From the NCBI GenBank assembly GCA_000708835.1, contig DF236964.1, positions 186,001 through 250,000 on the forward strand: DNA of 64,000 nucleotides, given 5' to 3'. Origin of the DNA: Klebsormidium nitens. Lineage: Eukaryota; Plantae; Klebsormidiophyceae. The notes below the pieces were generated by a model. It saw only the letters and a program-made list of their open reading frames with translations, had not been told where the DNA came from and ran no database searches. Positions 24,634 through 39,600 of the stretch are shown in pieces; the first letter of the stretch is position 1; the number at the start of each line of letters is the position of its first letter. Both the position numbers and the translations under genes were made by a program.

Positions 24634-27600
24634 ATGAGCGCGCTCCGCAACCCCCCAGGCCGCCGCTTTGGCTGGGGCCTGCCCCTCGCCGCTCTTGCAT
24701 GCTGTGCGCTTATCGTACAGCTGTTGAGCGGACAGTCATGGGTGCTTCCCGCCGTTTGCTGTAAGGGATGCGTGCGTGACCCCCCGACAGGCTGTAGTCC
24801 AGGGGAACTAGACAGGGCTGATCACTCCGTGTTCCATCTGTCGGAGTCTGACCTGCCCGGAAACGATCTGGTCTTCAAGCTGTTCTCAGAAGAGGTGAAA
24901 AAGGATGGGCCGGGGTTGTTGGCAAGTGGACAAGGACAGCAAGTGCGTACTGATCCGGTTAAGTTTGCAACTAGAGCGGAGAAAGAGGTTCCAAAGTTGT
25001 TCCAGGTTTCTGGGCAGCGGGAGACCGTCGCCTCTGGCAGTGACGAGTCCAGCCCAAAGTCTCAAAACCCAGCAAGTCAAAAGGCAACATTCAACTCCTC
25101 ATCTGATACTCTTCCAGATATCGATCACTCAACGGCAGAGGCCGCCAAGAACAAGGCCTCTCATCCCTTCAGAATTGCACTCTTGAGCTCGTACACCCCC
25201 CAAAGGTGTGGTCTCGCGGAAGCCACGCACGATCTGTACCACAGGGGGTTGGTTTCGGCAGGGCTGCTGACCCCCCGCGTGAGTGTGGGTGTAATTGCGG
25301 TGGACGAAGGGGGGACGGCGGGCAATTACTCGGAGGAGGTTGCCTTTGTGATCAGCAAATGGAACCAGGAGGACTATGTGCGAGCCGCTGACGTCATCAA
25401 CCGCGACTATGACGTCCTCAACGTCCATCATGAGTGAGAAGGCGCTCTTTCTGTGCCTGGCCCTTACGACATTCTGCTTTTCTTTTTTGTCCCTTTCCAT
25501 TCGCTTTCTTCTCAATTTGACACTTCAGCTTCATGCAACATGCGTAGTATGCTAGCAGACCCTCTGTGTCATTGCATTCCGATGGAACATCTGAACCATA
25601 ATAGCAGGGATGCTGGTTCACTCCATTTGCGCCCAATTGCCAGTATTGTGATGCCAATGACATCATGTCTGTTAAGAAAGACTACTCAATTCCCCTTCTG
25701 ACGATGTCCCTTGTCTCGTTTCCTCGACTCTGAATTAGCGGTTCAAGTCTGCCTGCAAAAGTAGGAGGCATCAGAAAGTTGTCCTTAATCAGGTCACGTC
25801 AAAGCACCACTTTGTTTCTGGGTTTTTTCGAATAAGGTACTCCAGATTCGGAAGAGAACTTCTTTCTCCCAACGGGCTCCGCTCTTCTCATATATCCCTT
25901 TCCCTTCTGTCCCCTATAGGTACGGAATCTTTGGGGGTGACAATGGGGAGTTTTTGCTGGCCCTCCTATCCCGCTTAACCGTTCCAGTCGTAACCAACCT
26001 ACACACCGTCCCTACTTCCCTATCTGTCCAAGCCAAAACGGTCGTCGGCAGAATCCTGCACCATTCCGCCCGAGTCCAAGTCTTCCTCCCCTCCTTATGC
26101 GACCGCCTCCGGAATCAGTTCTCCCTCCGTTTCAAATGCTCGTTTTCGCCTCGAGGGGTCCCCTCGCCATCAGCCAAAACTCGCCAGATCCTTTCGGGGG
26201 GGTCAGATGAGGTGGTGATCGTCACCCCCGGACCGCTGGCCCCCGCCCATCGCATCGAACACATGATCGAAGCGATGAAGATAGTGCGGGCCGCGATCCC
26301 CCAAGCAGTGTATCACGTTCAGGGGGATCTCCCGAGAAATGCTGACGTCACCGCTGCCAAAGATTACGTCAGCAGTCTGAGGCGCCTGGCGGAGTCGTTC
26401 GGGGTAGAGGACGCGGTTCGCATCGAGGAGCGGTTTGCTGGTAACGAGGAGCTAACCACGCTGGTTAGCAGGGCGAGTCTCGTGGTTACGCCGTACATTG
26501 ACCGGACCCAGGTGAGAGGTTAATCGCTCTTTGCAGCTTCGAGAGTTTGTGAAGTCAGCATCAGAGCCAAAAGGGGCACGACTCCAGAAGAGTATTGAAG
26601 CTTGACTAGTTCCTGCCAAATTGCGGAGTCTGCCAGGATCCATCCACTTAGTCTCAACAAAGTGTATAAAGAGACGCCTAAGGTGAATGAATTCGACGTT
26701 TCCGTGTGTGTGGGCTCAAGTTTTTAACCTTTCGCTTTGCATGCTCTGAATTAAGCCGATCCATTTTCACAGAAACAATCCAGAAGTTTGTTTTTTATTG
26801 TTTTCGCGAGGACGTCTTTCTGATTTATGACTCGATGACGTTGACCATTATTTAGATGAAGCCGTCGAGATACCCGAAGGGCAAGGAAACGCGGCGAAAC
26901 TTTTGAATCGGGCACCGAGTGGCGCCTAAGTATGGGCATTCGCTTCTGTCCAGACTTTGTGGTCATGAGCTGACATGCAATCAGTCGCCCTCACGGGTTT
27001 CTTTGGAACACGCTCTTCAAACGCTTACCACAAGGAAACCCGATTCATTTCCAGTTCGAGACCGCTGCGAACTGCGCCCTATTAATCACGAACCGTGTTT
27101 GATCTTTCCACAGGCTCCGACATGGAATTTGCTGCTGCGATCGACCTTCGTAACCTCCTCCAATCGTATTCCTTCTCCGTGAACAGCCCACGTGTGAAAT
27201 TGCTTTCTCTAAGTGCTCTCCGGAGTTCTGCCTCTTGGGGTCGCCCCTAAACTCCTTGATTATTTCGGGCATCTGATGTGACACTGACGCCAACTGAAAT
27301 ACTCAGAATTGTTTTCAGATGTACCTAGTCATTTTCAAAAAAGTGGTTATAATAAAACGGGTCAAAAAAGGTTCTAATACTGATAAGAAACCGATTCCTT
27401 CATTCAGGTTTCCTCTGACGTCCTGGCTCTTGCCGTCGGCCTCGAACGCCCCGCGATCGCGAGCCCCTTTGAATCCGCTCTGACGCAGACCAGATTGCTC
27501 AGAACCCTTCTTAGGTTTGGTGACAGCAAAACGGAATATATTTTGAAATACTGATGAAAATTTGGTTCCTTCAGGTTTCCTCTGACGTCCTGGCTCTTGC

Positions 27601-28909
27601 CGTCGCCCTCGAACGCCCCGCGATCGCGACCCCCTTCGAGTACGCTCGATGGCTCTGCAACCGGACCAGTGCCGGCCCCCCCGTTTGCGCGCTTGTCCCC
27701 TTCCAAAACCCCGGCGCGCTAGCGGCGGCCGCGGTGCGCATCCTGCGCCGCCCCGACCTGCCGCGCGTCGCGCCCGCGGCCGCGCACGCGCGCGGCATGC
27801 TCGCATACTGGCCCGAGCTGGCGGCGCGCTGGGTGGCGCTCCTGCGGGACGTCAGCGTGACGTGGCAGAGGGACCGGACGTTCCGCGTCAGGCGGATCCA
27901 GGGGCCGTTTCCTAAGGCTGACGTAAACGATCCGAAGAACGACGAATCTCAAATGAAAACGGACGGCTTAGGGGGGCAATCTCGTTTGACGGCCTCGCAA
28001 ACGGAGCGGGATGAGATTGGCGGGCTTCGATTGAAAACGGGTCCTTTCAGGGGGGTCCATTCGGCCGGTGGAGCGCCCCCCCTCGAGCGGTGCACCGCGC
28101 AGCGGGGCGCTGACGGCTCCTTTTACGCCACCAATAGCTTATTGGCCCTGCACGGCCGCTTTTATAAGGGCGGGGAGCATAGAGTCAAGCATACCCTGCT
28201 CCAAGGCTCGGACCTGGTATTAGGTGCCGCGGGCGTCCGATACGGCGGAGCGTTTCTGTCCGCACGATCGGAGATTGGACAGGTGGAAACGAGGCTCATT
28301 CCAGACGTGGAGAATTTACGACAGGAGGGGAGGGGCGCGGTTCTGGGGTTCGAGTCGCTTGTGTTCGCTTCCGGGGATGAATCTGCGCCGGTTGCGAGAG
28401 TGTCAACGTCGTTCCGACTGCAGCCAAAGTCGACGGCTCTGACACTAGAGTTTCGAGTCGAGGCGATGGGCGGGTGCTTGGCTGACGTGGAAATCATCTC
28501 CGGAATGGATTGCATGTCTAGCACTTTCCCCGGGCTTACTTTCGACACGTTTCGTGCCCGGTCGACCGACGGCAAAGACATCGGTGTCTCAGCTACGAGC
28601 GCGGAAGCGACGTTGTTCGATCGCACCAAAGACGGAGTTTCAGACTGGAGTATTGTCATGAACAGGGCGGGCGATTTCGGTGTCGTCACGGTTCCCCGTA
28701 ACGAGTCTCTGTTGAGCTCCACGTTCAGCGAAGTAAGCGAAGAGGCGGGTGACGTCAGCTTCCATTACGTGGCGAGTCGGTATGCCCTAGGCGAGGTGTG
28801 CAGTGGTTTGCCAAAGTCCATCGTAGAAGAGAAGATTCTGGTATCGAAGATAGATGTAGATAATTGGTCTTTTTTTGACGGAGTCGTTCGAGAGCTTAAT
28901 CCTAACTGA
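24634..28909 (+). CDS. GT4 (Glycos_transf_1) glycosyltransferase of bacterial mannosyltransferase-like type, with N-terminal signal anchor and C-terminal unknown domain (paralog A)
   Basis: Exons 24634-25433, 25920-26511, 27575-28909. Motifs RIALLSSYTPQRCGLA, NVHHE|YGIFGG, VPVVTNLHTV, VTPYIDRTQ|VS..LA.A...PAIATPFEYA, LVPFQNPGALAAAAVRIL. Hydrophobic segment FGWGLPLAALACCALIVQLL follows an Arg-rich N-terminus. Confidence 0.85.
27400..27480 (+). repeat. Near-identical copy of the acceptor plus 5' end of GT4-A exon 3
   Basis: ttcag|gtttcctctgacgtcctggctcttgccgtcggcctcgaacgccccgcgatcgcgagcccc, ~167 bp upstream of the live acceptor at 27574. Confidence 0.9.
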
Positions 28910-30187: not shown

Positions 30188-32224
30188 AATAGTGATATAA
30201 AAAGCAAGATTGTGTGTAAGGGAAAATCCAATTTTTTTGAAACTCCTCGGTTGGGAAGCTTGAAGAGGGCTTGAAGGCGTTGCCGTAGCACGGAAATTTT
30301 GAATTTTAGATCTGAGCCATTGGAATTACTGCGTTGTGCAGCGTTGCAAGGCGATGTTCAACGGCTTTTTACAATGGAATGAAATCTCGCGAGACGATCG
30401 CAGGAGCCCCGGAAAGTTCCGCTGTAAGAACACAGACCTTCGTGAACGTCCCCTCAGGCTGCAGTCCCAGCTGCTGTTTCTTCCGCTGAACCTGCCTTTC
30501 CGAAATCTTGCACGGAATTCCGGCATGTCGTCATTTAGTAACCATTATAATTTAGCCTGTTGGCAAGTTGCCACTTGGCAGTCACCAGTATCAGGCGGAA
30601 ATGACGGTGCGGACTTGTAATTTTGCGCAGACCCTGCAATGATTGCGAAGATGAGAATGCGCCCATACGGGTCCTCGACACAACCCTTCGGGAAGCAACT
30701 TTCGTAATTCACATCTTGGTCACAAACCGAACACGTGAACATGTTTTGCACCCTGTCAGTGTCACCCGGAATCACACCGCACTGCGCATAGTAGTACCTA
30801 GTACATACACGAACACCCATTTCCGCCCTTTGTTTCAGCAAACGTGCCAGGGGTGAGGGAGTTCTCAAGCGAATCAGTCCGAGTTCTCATGAAGAGAGCT
30901 TCCTTGTTTAGGGCACATACCCGCCATGTGCTCTTGGAGAACATTTGCGCGTTGATATGAGACTATGTAATAAGGGGAGGATTGAGAGATTGACGAGGCG
31001 GCACCTTTCGCTGTTGTGGTTCCGAGACAAGCAAGTGTGACCATTGCATATATATACATTTCCGGCGTTGCTGTGCAGGATCAGATGATAACTCATGGTG
31101 AGTGTCAAGTTCCTGCAGGTCCGGGGCAGGCCTTGGATCCTCAAGCTTAGTTAGCAAACCGACTGTCTGTTGCAGCATCTTTGCACCTGCTAGTTCATTA
31201 GCAGACCGTGTATGCAGCTCCAGATTGCTGACATGTATCGCATCATTGCGCCTGATCATTGACAGGCTGGCCGCACATGATGTGTACATCAGATTTCTTC
31301 CTTTCTTACAATCTCGCCTCTGAACAGCGTATTTCCTTCAAAAGCTTTCTGAATGCTTTGACGTTGCTTGGAAGCTCTATGGCCTGGTCCAGTCTGTCTC
31401 AAATGCTGAGCAGCTTCCTGAAAAGAGGTCAATCCAGACTCCCAATTTGAAATTTGTCGTGGCTGTGTGCTTGGCACGAGTCTCCAATCATCATCAAAGG
31501 TCCCCTGCTTGTGGATTCCCATCAGGTTTTGACTATCTGGCCAACAAGGAACTAATTGTTCGCAATGATTAGCAGTTGGTTTAATTGACCCTTTTTCATC
31601 CTGCAGGTTTATTATAAGTGCAGCACTGGCTGAACTGCACATTGGCTTGTCTACTCTCGCTGATCCAATCTGGTTATCATAAGTTCAACACAGTGGATAC
31701 TGAGGCCAGATTTGCAAATTAATCTTGAGGAGACTGGATTGCTGCTGGGACTACTGTTGGTAAGCATCTCTTTGAAATCACCATTCTCTTTTAAAGAGGC
31801 AGTCTCTGGAACAACTCTACTTGATAGCCTGAGAGGTACTACCTTATCTGCCCCCCCAATGTAAGGTGTGGGGTGAGCTCCAGATTACGTCAACAATGGC
31901 TGCTTCCTTTCACTTACGGGCCTAAATCAATGTCCAAGGTTAGTTCTTCACAGCTTATGCAGGCAGGCCGATGAATCATGTGTCGTTGCAAGGCCAAGAG
32001 ACCGAAACGCTTGTTGGGTGCACACGTTGTCGCCGCTGGATGATTTGTGTCCCTAATGTATGAACAGTAAGGGCTGCTGATAAGTTTGCTTATCAAGGCT
32101 GTTTTTCAGTGAGTAGGCAGACTTGTAAAAGTTTGCAGGTACTTTTATTATCATACACATTGCTGTGGGTTCTGAGCATTCCACATCTTGTTGTTTACAG
32201 GCTGTACTACCGCTGACACTCACG

Positions 32225-35050
32225 ATGGCGCTTGTCAACTTTGCGGTGCTACTGCTTCTCGTTGCCACTCTCCCAAGCTGCCACCCTTTTACCATAAGGG
32301 ATTTCGAGGAGCGCCTTGGCTATAGCCTCAACGCCACAACCGCGGTACTGGATATGTCCAACGCAAGCCCTCCGCTACAGGGTCCCATTCCCTTGGAGTT
32401 GGGCAGCTTTGTGAACCTGACAAAGGTGGATCTTTCAGGGAACAACATTACTGGAGGGATCCCCCCGGAGCTTGGCCGGCTGGTCAATGTTACTTCTTTG
32501 ATCCTCGACGATAACCACCTGTCGGAGCCCATTCCGAAAGAGCTAGCTGGGCTGATTAAGCTCAGGAGCCTCTCTCTCAGCAACAACAGCTTGTCGGAGG
32601 GGATTCCAATCGAGCTTGGCTCCCTGTCCAGCCTGAAGAATCTGGATCTTGGTGCAAACCACCTGTCGGGTCCAATTCCAAAGCAGCTTGCTGCCCTAAG
32701 CAACTTGACCTTCCTGTTTCTGAACAATAACAGCTTGTCTGGGGAAATACCCATCGAGTTGGGGGCGCTGCGTAAGTTGTACGCGCTTAACCTGGCTGCA
32801 AACAATCTCACTGGAAACATACCTCCTGAGTTGGGCGACCTTGCGGGCATTTTCCACATAGACCTGAGCTTAAACAAGCTGACGGGTAGCATACCTGGTG
32901 AGCTGGGCAAGCTTCCAGTACAGATACTGGACCTGCAAAATAATAGCCTATCAGGTCAGATACCCCCTCAGCTGGGCAATCTTTCCAGCCTTTTTGCGGT
33001 GGACCTATCATACAACAATCTGGACGGGCCTATTCCCCCAGAGATAGGGGATATGGGCTGGAAAAAAACCAGCCCGTTCGGGATGTCCGTATACTTCCAA
33101 CACAATCGTCTGTCGGGACCGCTGCCCGCGGAATTTCGACGCCTGGTCGGCAGAGTTCTCACTCTCAACCTGGGGAACAACGAGTTCTCCGGGCCTCTGC
33201 CCTTTACTTTCGACGACTTTCCCGCGTGCTTTGCGGGCGTCATCCTCGGAAACAACAACTTCTCGGGGCCGTTTGTGTTGGAGCGCAGCAATTTCAGCTG
33301 CACTACCGGGTTAATCCTCAACAACAACAGCTTCTCCGGACCCATACCCGCAGCCCTCGGGAACAACGCTTCCTCTCTCCGTGGTATCGACCTATCAAAC
33401 AACAGGTTTACTGGGCCCTTACCCCCCGAGCTCGGTAAGCTTAAGTACCTATGGGTATTGGGCGTGAGCAACAACTCCCTATCCGGCCCGATTCCGCCAG
33501 AACTGGGGGCTTTGAGCAAGCTGACAACACTTGCTCTTATCGGCAACAACTTCAGTGGGGAGATACCGCCCAATCTGACGCACCTGGAGGTCTTGGACGT
33601 TAGCCGTAACCCGGGCCTTGTTAACCTGCCCCAAAACCTGACCAACAACGCGGAAAACCTGACTTTCCTGGGCATGTCTGGGCACGTTCCTGCCTGGGTT
33701 TCGGGCCTCAAGAAACTCCGGGGCCTTGTATTGAGGCCGCTCGATGGCCAGCCGTCGGAAGCCGTCCTCGACCTGTCTCACGTTCCAAACGGGACTCAGT
33801 TCGTCGCCGTCAGCGGAAACCAGCGCAACCTCTCGAAGATCGTCTTCTGGGAGGCTTGCAACTACGGCTGCACCATTGACCTCGTTGGGACTGGGGCGCG
33901 CCTTTCGCGCGGCACGAGGAGGGAGATCTGCTTGGGTAAGATCTCGGTCTTCTTATCGGGGGACCGTCCTCTGCGCGACGTCGATGCGCTGACCCTAACG
34001 AACAGCCAGGGCACGGTTTCCCTGCTCGATCCCTTATTCTTAGACAAGATTGATCTAGGCCCAGGCGGTCGTGCTTACACGGGCGTCAGCTTTCCCCGGG
34101 TTCAGGAGGGCAACCTTTGCAGGAACCCAGAGTCCCGCAAGGTGGTCGTGATTATGTTCTCGGTGTTTGCGGGGGCGCTGCTACTGGGCGCGCTTGTTGT
34201 CTCGATCGCCACTGCGCTACGGAGAACCAGAGCCGGGGGAAAACCACGCACGGAGTCAGCCATTGGAGCGACTCGGATGCAAGCGCCCCGTCTGGCCGGA
34301 GCTTATATCTGGGGCCTGATCGGCCCACTTCTCACGTGGGGCGCCCTGTATACGGATATCCGCGTCCTACTGGACGTCCGCGGCGCCTGGCCGCAGTGGG
34401 TCATTCTCGGGAGCATTTTGGCGTCCTATATTTCCGGGGCTCTCCTGGTGACGGAGCTTCTGCCGACGTCCGGCAGTTCTCTGCCGCCGGTGACGTCGCT
34501 GCGCATGCGGTGGATTTGGCCGCCCCCAGAACCAAACGCTGTGGGGGATCTGGGCACGACTGCATATCCTATGAGCCGCGCCAGGTGGGCGCTTCTATTG
34601 GTCGCTTGGCCTCTAGCTGTTCCAGTTGTGCCCCTGCTCGACTTTATGGTCCTCGTTGACCGGGTTGGCTTCCACGTGTCAACGTCGGTCAACACGGTTT
34701 ACAGTATGAGACCCTGGTATCAGACCCGGTCTCTGCTGGAGCTGGCGGTACGTACCGTGCCACAGATTGCTTTCCAGACGACCGTGTATCTGTTGGGCAA
34801 CTCGCGTGCGACGCGCTTCTACGTGGACGAGATTATTTTCGTGTCGTCTATCGGCGTTTCCTTGGTCTCCCTCCTTTTCCAACTCCTGACACTGTTCTGG
34901 GAAGCTGCCGCCGCCCCCGAGTATATTTGGATCACGTTTTGGAGGCACTTTAGGAGCGTGACTGGGCCGTGGACGACGTCAGCCGATGCCTGGTATGATG
35001 ATAACAATCTGAAGGTGGGCAGTGAGAAATTGGTGGAGCTGCCTCAGTGA
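32225..35050 (+). CDS. Intronless LRR receptor-like protein with signal peptide, ~17-19 plant-type LRRs, one TM helix and a multipass XK-like membrane module; no kinase
   Basis: Single ORF; likely start MALVNFAVLLLLVATLPSCHP. Repeats of LxxLxLxxNxLSGxIPxELG run from ~32330 to 33750. TM VVVIMFSVFAGALLLGALVVSI at ~34141-34210, followed by 4-5 further hydrophobic helices including RSLLELAVRTVPQIAFQTTVYLL. Confidence 0.9.
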   Translation: MALVNFAVLLLLVATLPSCHPFTIRDFEERLGYSLNATTAVLDMSNASPPLQGPIPLELGSFVNLTKVDLSGNNITGGIPPELGRLVNVTSLILDDNHLSEPIPKELAGLIKLRSLSLSNNSLSEGIPIELGSLSSLKNLDLGANHLSGPIPKQLAALSNLTFLFLNNNSLSGEIPIELGALRKLYALNLAANNLTGNIPPELGDLAGIFHIDLSLNKLTGSIPGELGKLPVQILDLQNNSLSGQIPPQLGNLSSLFAVDLSYNNLDGPIPPEIGDMGWKKTSPFGMSVYFQHNRLSGPLPAEFRRLVGRVLTLNLGNNEFSGPLPFTFDDFPACFAGVILGNNNFSGPFVLERSNFSCTTGLILNNNSFSGPIPAALGNNASSLRGIDLSNNRFTGPLPPELGKLKYLWVLGVSNNSLSGPIPPELGALSKLTTLALIGNNFSGEIPPNLTHLEVLDVSRNPGLVNLPQNLTNNAENLTFLGMSGHVPAWVSGLKKLRGLVLRPLDGQPSEAVLDLSHVPNGTQFVAVSGNQRNLSKIVFWEACNYGCTIDLVGTGARLSRGTRREICLGKISVFLSGDRPLRDVDALTLTNSQGTVSLLDPLFLDKIDLGPGGRAYTGVSFPRVQEGNLCRNPESRKVVVIMFSVFAGALLLGALVVSIATALRRTRAGGKPRTESAIGATRMQAPRLAGAYIWGLIGPLLTWGALYTDIRVLLDVRGAWPQWVILGSILASYISGALLVTELLPTSGSSLPPVTSLRMRWIWPPPEPNAVGDLGTTAYPMSRARWALLLVAWPLAVPVVPLLDFMVLVDRVGFHVSTSVNTVYSMRPWYQTRSLLELAVRTVPQIAFQTTVYLLGNSRATRFYVDEIIFVSSIGVSLVSLLFQLLTLFWEAAAAPEYIWITFWRHFRSVTGPWTTSADAWYDDNNLKVGSEKLVELPQ

Positions 35051-36693
35051 TCGGGGTATATATGCAGAATATTATTTAACGGTCATTCGTGCTGGAAGCG
35101 ACAATCCATGCGGACCATGCAAGTACAATCACGACAACGTCCCTTTCGGGGATCAGGCAGTACACATTAGGGGTTGCATATCCTAGGGTTTAAGTCGGCG
35201 TCAATTTTATGGGAGGCCGGTGCCGCCTTCTGTACGAACGTAAGGCCATCATTAATGGCCGGAGTTGCTTCTTCTCGACAGTACCACCGCCGTAAAGAAT
35301 GATCGACAGGTCGAGGAAGAATACTCATCATGCCCGTTTGAAACGTGACCTTGATGATAGGACTCCAGTCGAGTCATATTTCTCGCTTGTTCAGTATGCA
35401 ATGAAGCGTCACTTGGAGTCATCCGGTTCAGCTTTTATATCAAATGAAGTCAATGCTGTAGAAGGATGCGTGGTTGATCTGGTTGATCCGCGTGTGTGTG
35501 CGGCAACGGGGCAGATTATGCTAGCTGTGTTTGATGTTTTGGGCATTTGTTAAATGACCACGAGCCCTCTCAGTCTTCTTTTCATTTTAAGGTCCGACCT
35601 AGCTTATCGTACTAGTGGCAATATTCGAGTCCATTCAATGGCAAAGTTCTACAAATCCAATGATTTCCTTGAGTTGGAATCCAGTGCGAAAACGAACGTT
35701 TGCCTTTTAGATATCATGAGCGCTGCGGCGCGCACACTTAGTACCAGTACTTAATTGTTGCGGGCCATGCCAGCAGTGTAACTATAGTATGCTGAACATA
35801 CTGCTTTAGCCGATCGGACGGTACAACCTGATTCGGTATGTGTCGGATCTGTGCATGAGAAGCTCACTCAGTGAGCGCGGCACTGATATATCCAGAATTT
35901 AGGATATGCACGCATAATTGGATCATGGATCGAATGCAACGGTAACTTACTTGTCATACTTGGCACGGCAAGCTTCACGCAATTCGACCATGTACGATGA
36001 TGCGAACAGTGATTAGGATTGCGGCTAACACGGTACGCGAGTTAGTACGTGGGGCCGGTGAATTATTTGCACGCTTTGTATTAGTGACTATTTGTGGGAT
36101 CAAATTGAAACAGGCTTAACGGAAGCACGCGTACTCCTGCAATCGGGCTCAGGGCCTGATATAACGACTCTAGCCATGGCCTTTTGCGCATCATTGTGGT
36201 TTATGTCATGTGCTTACACTGGTTTTCCGGCCAATGTCATGAGGTGCATAGCTCAGTACTATAGATGAAGCCAGTTTTCTACTTTATGGCACCTCAAGCT
36301 GAGCAACAACTGTACCCGCCGTACGCTTGTAAAAAGTGAGCGCGCGCCAGAACACTGTTTTCAGATGATGGGCCGATCGGCCAACGGACATATGTTCAAT
36401 CCTACACGCCCTCTCGGTACAATCAGTTGCTAAAGTATAGCCAGCGAATAAGCCGCCCGATAAGCAAGGATCAAAATGTTTATTTTTGCTGTACAGAAGA
36501 AAATAGAAGTTTCTGTCCAGTATTCTGGACTCCTCGAATCAAGACATTATTAGCTCGCCTCTAAGATACGAGTTAAAGAGCGCGCTGTGTTGTAACAGTG
36601 TTGCATGCGAGGCAGCTGTAGTCGAACGCATGCTGTATAATAAAGCCTACTACCCTACAGGTTAAGGTGATAAGCAGGTCGGATTTCTTCAGT

Positions 36694-39600
36694 TTAGTGA
36701 CTGGTCTCGGCTATTCGATGGTAGTCCTGCGTTCTAAACGCATCCTCCACCAGTTTCGTATCGACAGGCCCGGACAGATCAAACCCTCTAAAGCTGTTGA
36801 CGTTTTGTAGCACGCCATCAAGTGCGGACCAACTTTTCGGGTCTATATTTGACACCAAAAACTTGTCTTCGATTACGGACTTTGGGTAACCTTCGCAGAC
36901 CTGACCCACAAAGTACCGACTCGCCACGTAGTGAAAGTTAGCATCACCATTGTCGCTTTCCCCACTGCTACAGAAAGTAGAGACCAGCAGAGACTGATTC
37001 CTGGGGATGGTGATCACACCGAATTGGCCCTTTTTGTTGGAAACGAGGCTCCAGTCTGGAAGCTCGTCTCTGGTGCGATCGTACAGCATAACTTCACCGC
37101 TCGCAGCAGAGACGCTCCGTGCTTCGCCGTTTGCTAACCGTCCGTAAAAGCTGTCAAAAACTAGCCCGGGAAAGAGACTCGACATGGAATCCATGCCGGA
37201 AACGATCTCGACCTCCCGCAAGCACCCGCCAAACGCTTCGATCCGAAAGTCGAGTGTCAAGCCCGCAAACCCAGGCCGCAGACTGAAGAACGTTGACACC
37301 CGCCCAACTGGTTTCGACTCGGTCTCGGAAACGGATAGAAGCGTTTCGAGTCGCAGAAAGGCGTCACTCCCAGGTCTTCCGCCGCTGATCTCCCACGCGT
37401 CCGGTACGAGCCGCGTTTCCAGCCGTCCGATCTCCGATCGTGCGGACACGAACAGCCCGCCGTACCGGACGCCCGCGGTCCCCAGCACCAAGTCCGAGCC
37501 GTGCAATAGCGTATGCTTGATCATATGGTCCTGGCCCTTATCTACCTGCCCGTGCAATGCAGACACCCCATTCGCAATATGGAAGGTGTCGTCCTTGCCC
37601 CGCTGGGCGACGCACCGCTTGAGGGGGGGCGCCCATCCGGCGAAACGGACCCCCCCGAACGTAAGCCTCCGCAGCCACCTATTGACCTCCTCGCGCCGCT
37701 TCTGCGACGCCGTCGAGAAGAGCTCCCGCGCCAAGTCGTCCGTTCTCACAGCTTCGCCGTCGTTAAATCGACCGACTTCGTTCTTCTCGCGCGCTCCAAT
37801 CTGAGCACTTTCCCGCGCGCCAGATCCGCTCCCATTGCGCCACGTCAGCGTGACGTCGCGCAGGAGCGCCACCCAGCGCGGCGCCAGCTCCGGCCAGTGC
37901 GCGAGCATGCCGCGCGCATGGGCGGCGGAGGGGGCGACGCGCCGCGCGTTCGGGTCGCGCAGGATGTCGATCGCGGCCGCGGCTAGCGCGCGCGCGTCGC
38001 GGAACGGGACCAGCGCGCAAGCGGGGGGTCCGGGTGCGGTGCGGTTGCAGAGCCATTGGGCGTATTCGAAGGGGGTCGCGATGGCGGGGCGTTTGAGGCC
38101 GACCGCGAGTGCCAGAACACCTGACGAAACCTGCGTTTGAAAGGTTGGTTAGAGCTGATTAGAGTTTATTTCAGTGGCATAGATGGAAGAACATTCAGAA
38201 TCGTTTTGTGTATTGCGAAGGGCGTCGCGATGGCGGGGCGATTCAGGCCGGCCGCGAGTGCCCAAACGCCTGACGAAACCTGCGGGTTCAGACATTGGTT
38301 AGAGCTGGTTAGGAGTTGATCTCAGTGATATGGAGGTAAGGACGTACAATATTGTTGGTTGTATTGGAGGGGTGTCGCGATGGCGGGGCGTTTCAATCCG
38401 ACCGCGAGTGCCTAAAATTCTGAGAAACATGCGGATTTATTGCTGGATAGAACCGACTTATACTGGCACAGAAGTGATGGGTGTATTTGAAACGAGCGCG
38501 TTTGGCGGCGGATGATGAATGCTAAAATGCCTAACGAAACCTGCGGGTATGGATATTGGTTAGAGCTGATTAGTCTCGAGTTTCATTGGCCTAGAAGTAC
38601 GGACCGACAGAACTCGGTGCATTTTGAAAGGCATGGCGATGGGAGGGCGGTTTGAGGCCGACCGTAAGTGACAGAATCCCGGAAGAAACCTGCAAGAAGA
38701 TGGGTTAGTCCTCGTTCAGAAGTGGATTTGAGTTGAGTTTAGGGGTCTGGTGCCACTTGGCGTACTCAAAAGTAACGAGCAAACGTCCGGATGGTGGACT
38801 CAAGAGTAGTCGTCCGGACTCCAGAAGAATGAGATGATTCTCGAAGTTTCACAGGCGAAGTAAAGCGGGTTTTGAAGCAAGTTCCACTTGTTCTGAGAAG
38901 AAGGGTTCTCAAACTGATGAGGGATTGCGCTGGTGAAGCCGTTGAAGTCCGCAACCGCAAGTGCTTAGAAGACAAGAAAACCTGTTTTGGAGAAGTTCTG
39001 GCCGGCGTGGGTCACCAAGTGAATTTGATGTACGTGTTTGAGAGAAGAAACTGCGGCCGAGGGAGACTCCTTCATTTGACCGGGCTCTGAAATAATGGGG
39101 GAATAAGAGACGATCTGCAGCTGATTGTTGACTCGGCACGGGGTTCGAAGTAAAGGTTTTAAACTCAATGAGCGTGAACGAAGTGCGTATCGGTCAAGCC
39201 CCACTCCATTTGCCAGCACTTCAGACAAATTTTAAGGGGGAATGAAGGAACCGAGTGAAGGTGAACTCGCCGATTGAGTTTGCGCGTGCTCGGAAGAGTG
39301 GGCTACCAAGGGAGGCAGTGCGTTTGAGTCGGCGCCGCAACTGCCAAAACTCAAACATGAATCCTGGGGTTCCGAAAATAGAGTCTGAGATGGTTCCAAG
39401 ACGAGTTAGAAGATTGCTCCAGAACAACACCGAGTAAAGTTGGAGGTTCCACGAGGATCGGAAGGTTTTCAAGCAAGGTCTCTCAAACAAGTGGGCGTTT
39501 TTGAAATGGGGCTACGAAGGTTCCAGCCCGACTGCGAGTGGCAAAACTTCTCAGAGAACCTGCAGAACAATCAATTAGGCCTAGGATGACAGTTTTAATG

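Follow-up and report, generated by a model that had tools for sequence, protein, structure and literature searches.

A receptor-like protein of Klebsormidium nitens with leucine-rich repeats and a membrane module likely related to the first repeat of XK scramblases

The 64,000-nucleotide stretch of contig DF236964.1 of Klebsormidium nitens (GCA_000708835.1), referred to below as the window, carries at positions 32225-35050 of the plus strand a gene for a 941-residue protein in which an extracellular, plant-type leucine-rich repeat (LRR) array is followed by a transmembrane helix (TM0) and a multipass membrane module. This module very probably has the fold of the N-terminal repeat of the XK-related proteins and is a remote, single-repeat homologue of it. 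The XK reading is favoured because the shape search twice returned the same family and the same half of it, and because the half matched in Pfam and the motifs agree with this. The best explanation of the whole, and a likely one, is an LRR receptor joined to a single repeat resembling the XK N-terminal domain; that its output would be lipid-perturbing is a more tentative proposal. To our knowledge, XK-type scramblases have been described only from animals and always as two-repeat proteins, and the LRR receptors known from the plant lineage signal via a kinase, either as a domain of their own or in a co-receptor. The combination of a plant-type LRR receptor with a single XK-type repeat is absent from the literature searched, an incomplete full-text set in which no paper dealt with an LRR plus XK architecture or with XK-related proteins of any green alga, Klebsormidium included.

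The XK proteins XKR9 and Xkr4 consist of two repeats, an N-terminal domain (ND) and a C-terminal domain (CD); in the ND, TM1 and TM2 are splayed around a re-entrant helical hairpin at the inner leaflet and are followed by a parallel pair, TM3 and TM4 (PMC8298096, PMC12334663). The algal protein is built, in order, of a signal peptide, the LRR array, a Cys-containing juxtamembrane domain, TM0, the multipass module and a 44-residue tail, with the following features, all on the plus strand of the window:

32225-32299 (+), signal peptide, residues 1-25 (approximate), from the hydrophobic N-terminus with a hydropathy maximum of 2.18
32345-33724 (+), plant-type extracellular LRR array, residues ~41-500, 17-19 units of 24 residues, from Pfam, a regular expression and N-x-S/T sites
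33842-34129 (+), juxtamembrane Cys domain, residues ~540-635, from Cys conservation across relatives
34133-34231 (+), TM0, residues ~636-669, then a basic loop, from hydropathy and a model helix at model residues 8-40 (predicted local distance difference test, pLDDT, 93-98)
34283-34375 (+), module TM1, residues ~687-717, with A707, T710, D711 and D717, from model helices and conservation
34388-34468 (+), module TM2, residues 722-748, from model helices
34577-34666 (+), hairpin of two short helices, residues 785-798 and 801-814, from the model, at the position of IH1/IH2 in Xkr proteins
34709-34795 (+), module TM3, residues 829-857, with R835, E839, R843, P846-Q847, Q851 and Y855, from the model and conservation
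34829-34912 (+), module TM4, residues 869-896, with F872, S875 and S879, from the model and conservation
34916-35047 (+), cytosolic tail, residues 898-941, two predicted helices and no known domain, from the model and Pfam

Hydropathy places the signal peptide at residues 1-25, TM0 at 636-668 and further hydrophobic segments at 690-708, 723-749, 786-819 and 865-898. The predicted topology is that TM0 runs from outside to inside and so brings the chain to the cytosol, where TM1 would begin and where the hairpin would lie, as it does in XKR9 and other XK proteins. The module model has TM1, TM2, this hairpin, TM3 and TM4 in the order of the ND, and the ND fold is recovered by the shape searches described next.

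The structural evidence comes from AlphaFold2 models built from a 50-sequence alignment, one of residues 630-941 (312 residues; pLDDT 86.2, predicted template modelling score, pTM, 0.83) and one of the module alone, residues 687-899 (213 residues; pLDDT 88.3, pTM 0.82). Both were compared exhaustively with 48,161 PDB chains by VIA-align, which is independent of Foldseek, and for both models ranks 1-3 were taken by the three solved XK-family proteins, XKR9, Xkr4 and XKR8. For residues 630-941 the Z scores were 10.8 for XKR9 (7p16_A), 9.6 for Xkr4 (9boj_B) and 8.8 for XKR8 (8xej_X), with the next chain at 7.4; for the module they were 13.4 for XKR9 (root-mean-square deviation, rmsd, 3.5 Å over 152 residues), 11.4 for Xkr4 and 10.0 for XKR8 (171 residues), with the next chain at 9.8. 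The XK-family chains also had the longest aligned lengths among the VIA-align matches. In the module search, residues 2-190 of XKR9 (against model residues 2-211) and 7-190 of XKR8 were aligned, in both cases the first repeat only, and the Xkr4 alignment (chain residues 106-364) spans the TM1 and TM3 sites from D125 to P316. With Foldseek the best match of the module was XKR8 (probability 0.97, TMq 0.51), every other family reaching at most 0.29. The initial annotation had proposed that these helices form the first repeat of an XK fold, and the ranking of the three XK proteins for two models, over their first repeat only, supports this; the outcomes named there as contrary, a lack of XK likeness or a match to a G-protein-coupled receptor (GPCR) or MLO protein, did not occur, given that XK similarity is present, in structure and weakly in the profile matches of relatives, and that none of the GPCR, MLO, connexin and pannexin families matched better.

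Searches of the ESM Atlas were less informative: a whole-protein model (pTM 0.59) had no useful structural neighbours, a shape search with a trimmed model returned noise only, and a feature search gave weak leads only (0.81-0.82), one of these clusters having XK-related annotation in 40% of its members. A eukaryotic ESM Atlas cluster of 194 residues without a Pfam family matches the shape of the module (TM 0.69, 175 residues, rmsd 3.7 Å); its commonest named phylum is Bacillariophyta, the phylum being known for only 2 of its 97 members. The cluster may consist of stand-alone single-repeat XK-like proteins outside the green algae.

At the level of sequence the connection to the XK family is weak and is seen in relatives of the protein. 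The Pfam profile for XK-related proteins (PF09815) has 337 positions and a gathering threshold of 24.8 bits. Three relatives match it below that threshold: P0027 with 20.4 bits (E 2.8e-4) over profile positions 3-174, P0004 with 17.1 bits (E 0.0028) over positions 4-190, both colinear, and P0003 with 13.8 bits over positions 114-188 only, the E-values of the relatives running from 2.8e-4 to 0.03. P0027 on the one hand and the pair P0003/P0004 on the other represent two divergent lineages, with 24-30% identity to the module of the window protein. Of all families found under the threshold, PF09815 has the lowest E-value by a wide margin; only CcmH is matched by more members (4 of 50), at E-values no better than 0.097. 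A match to MntH (E 0.0027) in a profile search of PDB sequences was rejected as hydrophobic noise, and it disappeared with a deeper profile. The XK profile proposed as a check in the initial annotation is thus matched weakly, over its first half, by relatives, but not by the window protein itself.

The family shares motifs with the published XK proteins. Six residues essential for scrambling by Xkr8 all lie in the ND: D26 and D30 in α1, K/R134, E137 and E141 in α4, and R183 in α5 (PMC8500837). In TM1 the algal family has the motif Y-D-x-x-T-D, with Asp at position 707 in 60% and at position 711 in 70% of members, a spacing of four that is the same as that of D26/D30. In TM3 it has R-x3-E-x6-P-Q, with P846 kept in 96% and Glu or Asp at 839 in 58%, and position 843 is polar (Asn, Gln, Arg or Glu) in 42 of the 50 members; from the motif register, E839 would correspond to E137 and position 843 to E141 of Xkr8. 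The TM3 proline resembles that of Xkr4, in which TM3 is kinked at P316, three residues past E313, the equivalent of E141 of Xkr8 (PMC12334663). Other conserved positions are G858-N859, an F-x2-S-x3-S motif in TM4 and, in the hairpin, P796 (96%) and D806, which is Asp or Glu in 96% of the family. The window copy has A707, D711, E839 and R843, and so keeps only part of the acidic set. The four helix strings quoted in the initial annotation are present, at residues 702-718, 835-859 and 872-885, but the two aspartates that it saw in TM1 are D711 and D717, whereas the conserved pair of the family, four residues apart, is 707/711, the first of which is Ala here.

The module belongs to a sizeable family. 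A word-index search with residues 630-941 returned an orthologue in K. subtile and two K. nitens LRR proteins with 29-30% identity across the entire C-terminal part. P0002, the K. subtile transcript, is colinear with the gene as far as the shared stop, at 88-89% identity, and its identity is close to 90% in every region but the short loop between TM0 and TM1 (78%). With a profile of the C-terminal part, 1.84 billion representatives were searched exhaustively by HMMER, which yielded 101 clusters at E≤1e-3 and 46 at E≤1e-10; in every match the module profile occurs once, colinear and near the C-terminus, and LRR Pfam domains lie upstream of it in 14 of 20 scanned members. The named members come from K. 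nitens (several paralogues), K. subtile, Trebouxia spp. and Botryococcus braunii, the remainder being metagenome or read assemblies. The LRR-module family is therefore present in both streptophyte and chlorophyte green algae. Two further scans were empty: the C-terminal 312 residues alone returned nothing in the range of 170-545 residues by word index, and a scan of bacterial and archaeal genomes, a collection that cannot hold algal genes, gave 19 pattern matches, none of which was confirmed. In NCBI and UniRef the K. nitens paralogue P0003 (1140 residues) is named 'adenylate cyclase', and some K. nitens paralogues carry the automatic name 'FLS2-like'; both names are unsupported by the domains seen, which are LRRs and the module.

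Several observations weigh against this interpretation. The window protein has no PF09815 match even at E≤10, and with a best score of 20.4 bits among its relatives all matches to this profile stay under the gathering score. PDB sequences searched by HMMER with the profiles A1, A2 and A3 and with the P0004 piece yielded no Xkr chain at E≤10, canonical XK proteins are missing from the 101 matches among the 1.84 billion representatives, and a word-index search with the 50-sequence profile returned three further family members and zero XK proteins. On the structural side, the Foldseek E-values are not significant (0.26-0.6), VIA-align Z scores below about 13 in helical bundles can mean a common arrangement alone, and the Z of 10.0 for XKR8 is barely above that of generic four-helix bundles (9.8). 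At 707, an Asp in 60% of the family, the window copy carries Ala, and at 843, the position equated with E141 of Xkr8, it carries Arg; the residue equivalences to Xkr8 themselves rest on motif register rather than on a residue-level structural alignment. PF09815 proteins have two repeats and eight transmembrane helices, whereas a single copy of the module was found in all 101 matches; in Xkr8/9 the second repeat is required for both the C1/C2 cavities and the regulatory C-terminal plug. Homology of the module to the XK family is thus likely but unproven, because the window protein lacks an XK profile match and the HMMER searches contain no XK protein.

Given these points, it is possible that the module is an unrelated four-helix bundle which has converged on the XK shape and serves only to anchor the protein, to scaffold its oligomerisation or to offer a docking site to a co-receptor or a partner in the cytosol; in function the protein would then be a multipass receptor-like protein of an unusual kind. 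All sequence links to XK are sub-threshold or absent, generic helical bundles reach Z scores of 9-10 against the same model and no Foldseek E-value is below 0.26. However, this is unlikely for three reasons: first, the three solved XK proteins rank 1-3 among 48,161 chains twice, with the longest alignments and always over the first repeat. Second, PF09815 is the best sub-threshold family (2.8e-4), and it is matched within positions 3-190 by two divergent lineages. Third, the D-x3-D and E...P-Q motifs are common to both families, with a conserved helix-breaking proline. A scaffold or docking role as such is more probable than convergence, if the module is homologous to the XK repeat and inert.

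A second alternative is that the module oligomerises into a pore for ions or solutes, so that the protein would be a ligand-gated channel receptor in the manner of LRRC8, pannexin or connexin subunits. Buried polar residues are present in the transmembrane helices, and pannexin, connexin and LRRC8A chains do appear in the structural match list, with Z scores of 7.7-9.6; LRRC8A itself is a weak match to the module in VIA-align (Z 7.9). LRRC8, the volume-regulated anion channel (VRAC), is also among the few known proteins that join a four-helix membrane module to an LRR domain. Its LRRs are, however, C-terminal and cytosolic, whereas those of the algal protein are N-terminal and extracellular, and its membrane domain is of the pannexin fold and forms a hexameric anion channel, whereas the algal module fits the XK ND better. 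The pannexin, connexin and LRRC8A chains come after the XK proteins in rank, fit less closely (rmsd 4.5-6.7 Å) and lack a cytosolic re-entrant hairpin, and no Pfam channel family is found at E<0.1, the nearest being IRK at 0.2. A pore is consequently regarded as very improbable.

That an LRR gene and a membrane protein gene have been read as one through an error of annotation or assembly, or that the locus is a pseudogene, has a negligible probability and is rejected, since one stop-free frame of 941 codons is covered from untranslated region (UTR) to UTR by single spliced, RNA-derived contigs from several studies without differences, and since the same fusion is kept in K. subtile and is found in other K. 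nitens paralogues, Trebouxia and Botryococcus.

The gene model on which this rests is as follows. Positions 32225-35050 (+) form one uninterrupted coding sequence (CDS) of 941 codons and a stop codon in the open reading frame (ORF) listing, within a stop-free frame at 32165-35050 (+) that has its first ATG at 32225; the product of the public gene call for the contig is the identical 941-residue protein. Transcript evidence was taken from contigs of four runs (X1, X5, X9 and X13) in four studies, compared with window positions 30800-36500. The spliced contigs are 100% identical to the window and have two joints, 31096>31606 and 31758>32200, both GT..AG and found in all four runs; because they carry these joints the contigs derive from spliced RNA. 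In each run one contig covers 32200 to 35278-35418, and so the whole CDS, with zero differences from the window. In the spliced mRNA the ATG at 32225 is preceded, 41 codons upstream, by an in-frame stop, and therefore the start of the CDS is fixed at 32225, both introns belong to the 5' UTR and the whole CDS lies in the last exon:

30800-31096 (+), 5' UTR exon 1, from spliced contigs X1, X5, X9 and X13; its 5' end is undefined, the contigs beginning at or before 30800-30847
31097-31605 (+), 5' UTR intron 1 (GT..AG), from the joint 31096>31606 in four runs of four studies
31606-31758 (+), 5' UTR exon 2, from spliced contigs
31759-32199 (+), 5' UTR intron 2 (GT..AG), from the joint 31758>32200 in four runs
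32200-35418 (+), exon 3, whole CDS and a 3' UTR of ~370 nucleotides, from single contigs reaching 35278-35418
32225-35050 (+), CDS, 941 codons and stop, from the ORF, the public gene call and the upstream in-frame stop

The gene is intact and transcribed in K. nitens. Its 5' UTR (window 30800-32224) is long, about 470 nucleotides once spliced, is split by the two introns and contains six upstream ATGs, two of which are in the frame of the main CDS and reach a stop before it after 27 and 9 codons; the six ATGs suggest that translation of the gene could be controlled by upstream ORFs. In runs X1 and X5 there are contigs that are unspliced across intron 2 (window 31731-32188), at a depth of 3-4 against 19-55 for the spliced ones, which indicates some intron retention or pre-mRNA. 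Antisense ORFs of 196 and 247 residues lie opposite the LRR array (window 32320-33711, minus strand); they are taken for by-products of the repeats in the LRR coding sequence and are not counted as genes, the plus-strand gene accounting for the RNA-derived contigs. Downstream, at 36694-37908 (-) and beyond, is a multi-exon gene for an 835-residue glycosyltransferase (PF00534/PF13692), and upstream, at ~26225-28909 (+), one for a 908-residue protein without a Pfam family. A six-frame scan found no second copy of the LRR-module gene within the window.

The extracellular part of the protein is that of a plant LRR receptor. Pfam matches are to LRR families only (LRR_1 at 8e-42, LRR_4, LRR_8 and LRR_14) and lie within the N-terminal ~500 residues; the last 316 residues have zero Pfam matches even at E≤1, and kinase and TIR domains are absent from the protein in Pfam searches, with kinase families examined at E≤1. 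A strict regular expression finds 14 LRRs with a period of 24 residues and the plant L-x-G-x-I-P signature, with irregular units in between, a result compatible with the 17-19 repeats first counted, and there are 22 N-x-S/T sites. Hydropathy and Pfam also confirmed the rest of the architecture as first described: a signal peptide, a Cys-containing juxtamembrane region, one transmembrane helix with a basic loop, more helices after it and neither a kinase nor a TIR domain. In the juxtamembrane domain C632, directly before TM0, is invariant in all 50 aligned members, and among the relatives with long ectodomains C569 is kept in 37 of 38, C632 in 38 of 38 and C545/C549 in 17 of 38. This two-Cys domain probably forms a disulfide-stabilised stalk. 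It has no Pfam match and accompanies TM0 and the module; conservation extends beyond the helices, with C569, C632 and part of TM0 also kept across the family. It is thus well supported that this is a type-I surface protein, with the LRRs and the two-Cys domain outside the cell, TM0 crossing the membrane and a single-copy module after it.

With the plant LRR receptor-like proteins (RLPs) and LRR receptor-like kinases (RLKs) it shares the signal peptide, the extracellular 24-residue L-x-G-x-I-P repeats, a large number of N-glycosylation sites and a transmembrane helix after a juxtamembrane region, the first two of these features being those by which LRR-RLPs are recognised. RLKs, however, have a cytoplasmic kinase, and the algal protein has none (Pfam, E≤1), so it is not an RLK; nor is it a classical RLP, since RLPs have a single transmembrane helix and a short tail, and in the algal protein five helices span the membrane and a hairpin is added. 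With the XK-related proteins the module shares the ND fold, the order of helices, the predicted topology, the presence of acidic residues in TM1 and a TM3 that is polar and kinked at a proline. It differs in that XK-related proteins have two repeats with eight transmembrane helices, whereas the algal protein has one repeat of four, an extra TM0 and an LRR ectodomain, and in distribution, the LRR-module family being one of green algae and the XK proteins having been described in animals ranging from nematodes to humans (PMC12334663).

Xkr8 with its partner basigin or neuroplastin offers a further parallel, given that both systems join a large single-pass ectodomain to an XK-type membrane domain; the partner of Xkr8 is a separate immunoglobulin-type protein, whereas the LRR ectodomain is part of the same polypeptide in the algal protein. 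The suggestion in the initial annotation that the protein carries its own basigin-like partner is nevertheless weak: the basigin helix contacts α9 of Xkr8, in the second repeat (PMC8500837), and TM0 cannot occupy an equivalent site because this repeat is absent in the algal protein.

It is proposed that ligand binding by the LRRs would change the packing or oligomeric state of the module, that two half-modules could possibly pair into an XK-like whole, and that membrane lipids would in this way be perturbed or scrambled locally, or a partner in the cytosol be recruited. This mechanism is preferred on the grounds that the ND of Xkr8 and Xkr4 carries a buried acidic 'stairway' required for scrambling lipids or thinning the membrane, and that at the corresponding motif positions the family has kept residues that are polar. 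A lipid-perturbing output is plausible, since the ND carries determinants of scrambling and thinning and the activity of Xkr4 is accompanied by loosening of the ND from the CD (PMC12334663). By analogy with these animal proteins, lipid scrambling or thinning as the actual output is nonetheless a tentative proposal and somewhat doubtful. It is rather unlikely, though conceivable, that single-repeat modules paired by ligand would form a two-repeat XK-like assembly that scrambles or thins the plasma membrane, a direct output in which lipid asymmetry is the signal, and that the module, which the 194-residue cluster resembles in shape, may be a pre-duplication form of the animal XK fold.

In summary, this expressed and conserved family suggests an unexplored receptor output, in which membrane lipids would be controlled or a lipid-transfer partner docked. 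As a natural 'half' protein it provides a test of which part of the XK fold suffices for scrambling and of how the internal duplication arose. If the module were inert, the family would still add a new, multipass class to the LRR receptor-like proteins, in the lineage sister to the land plants.

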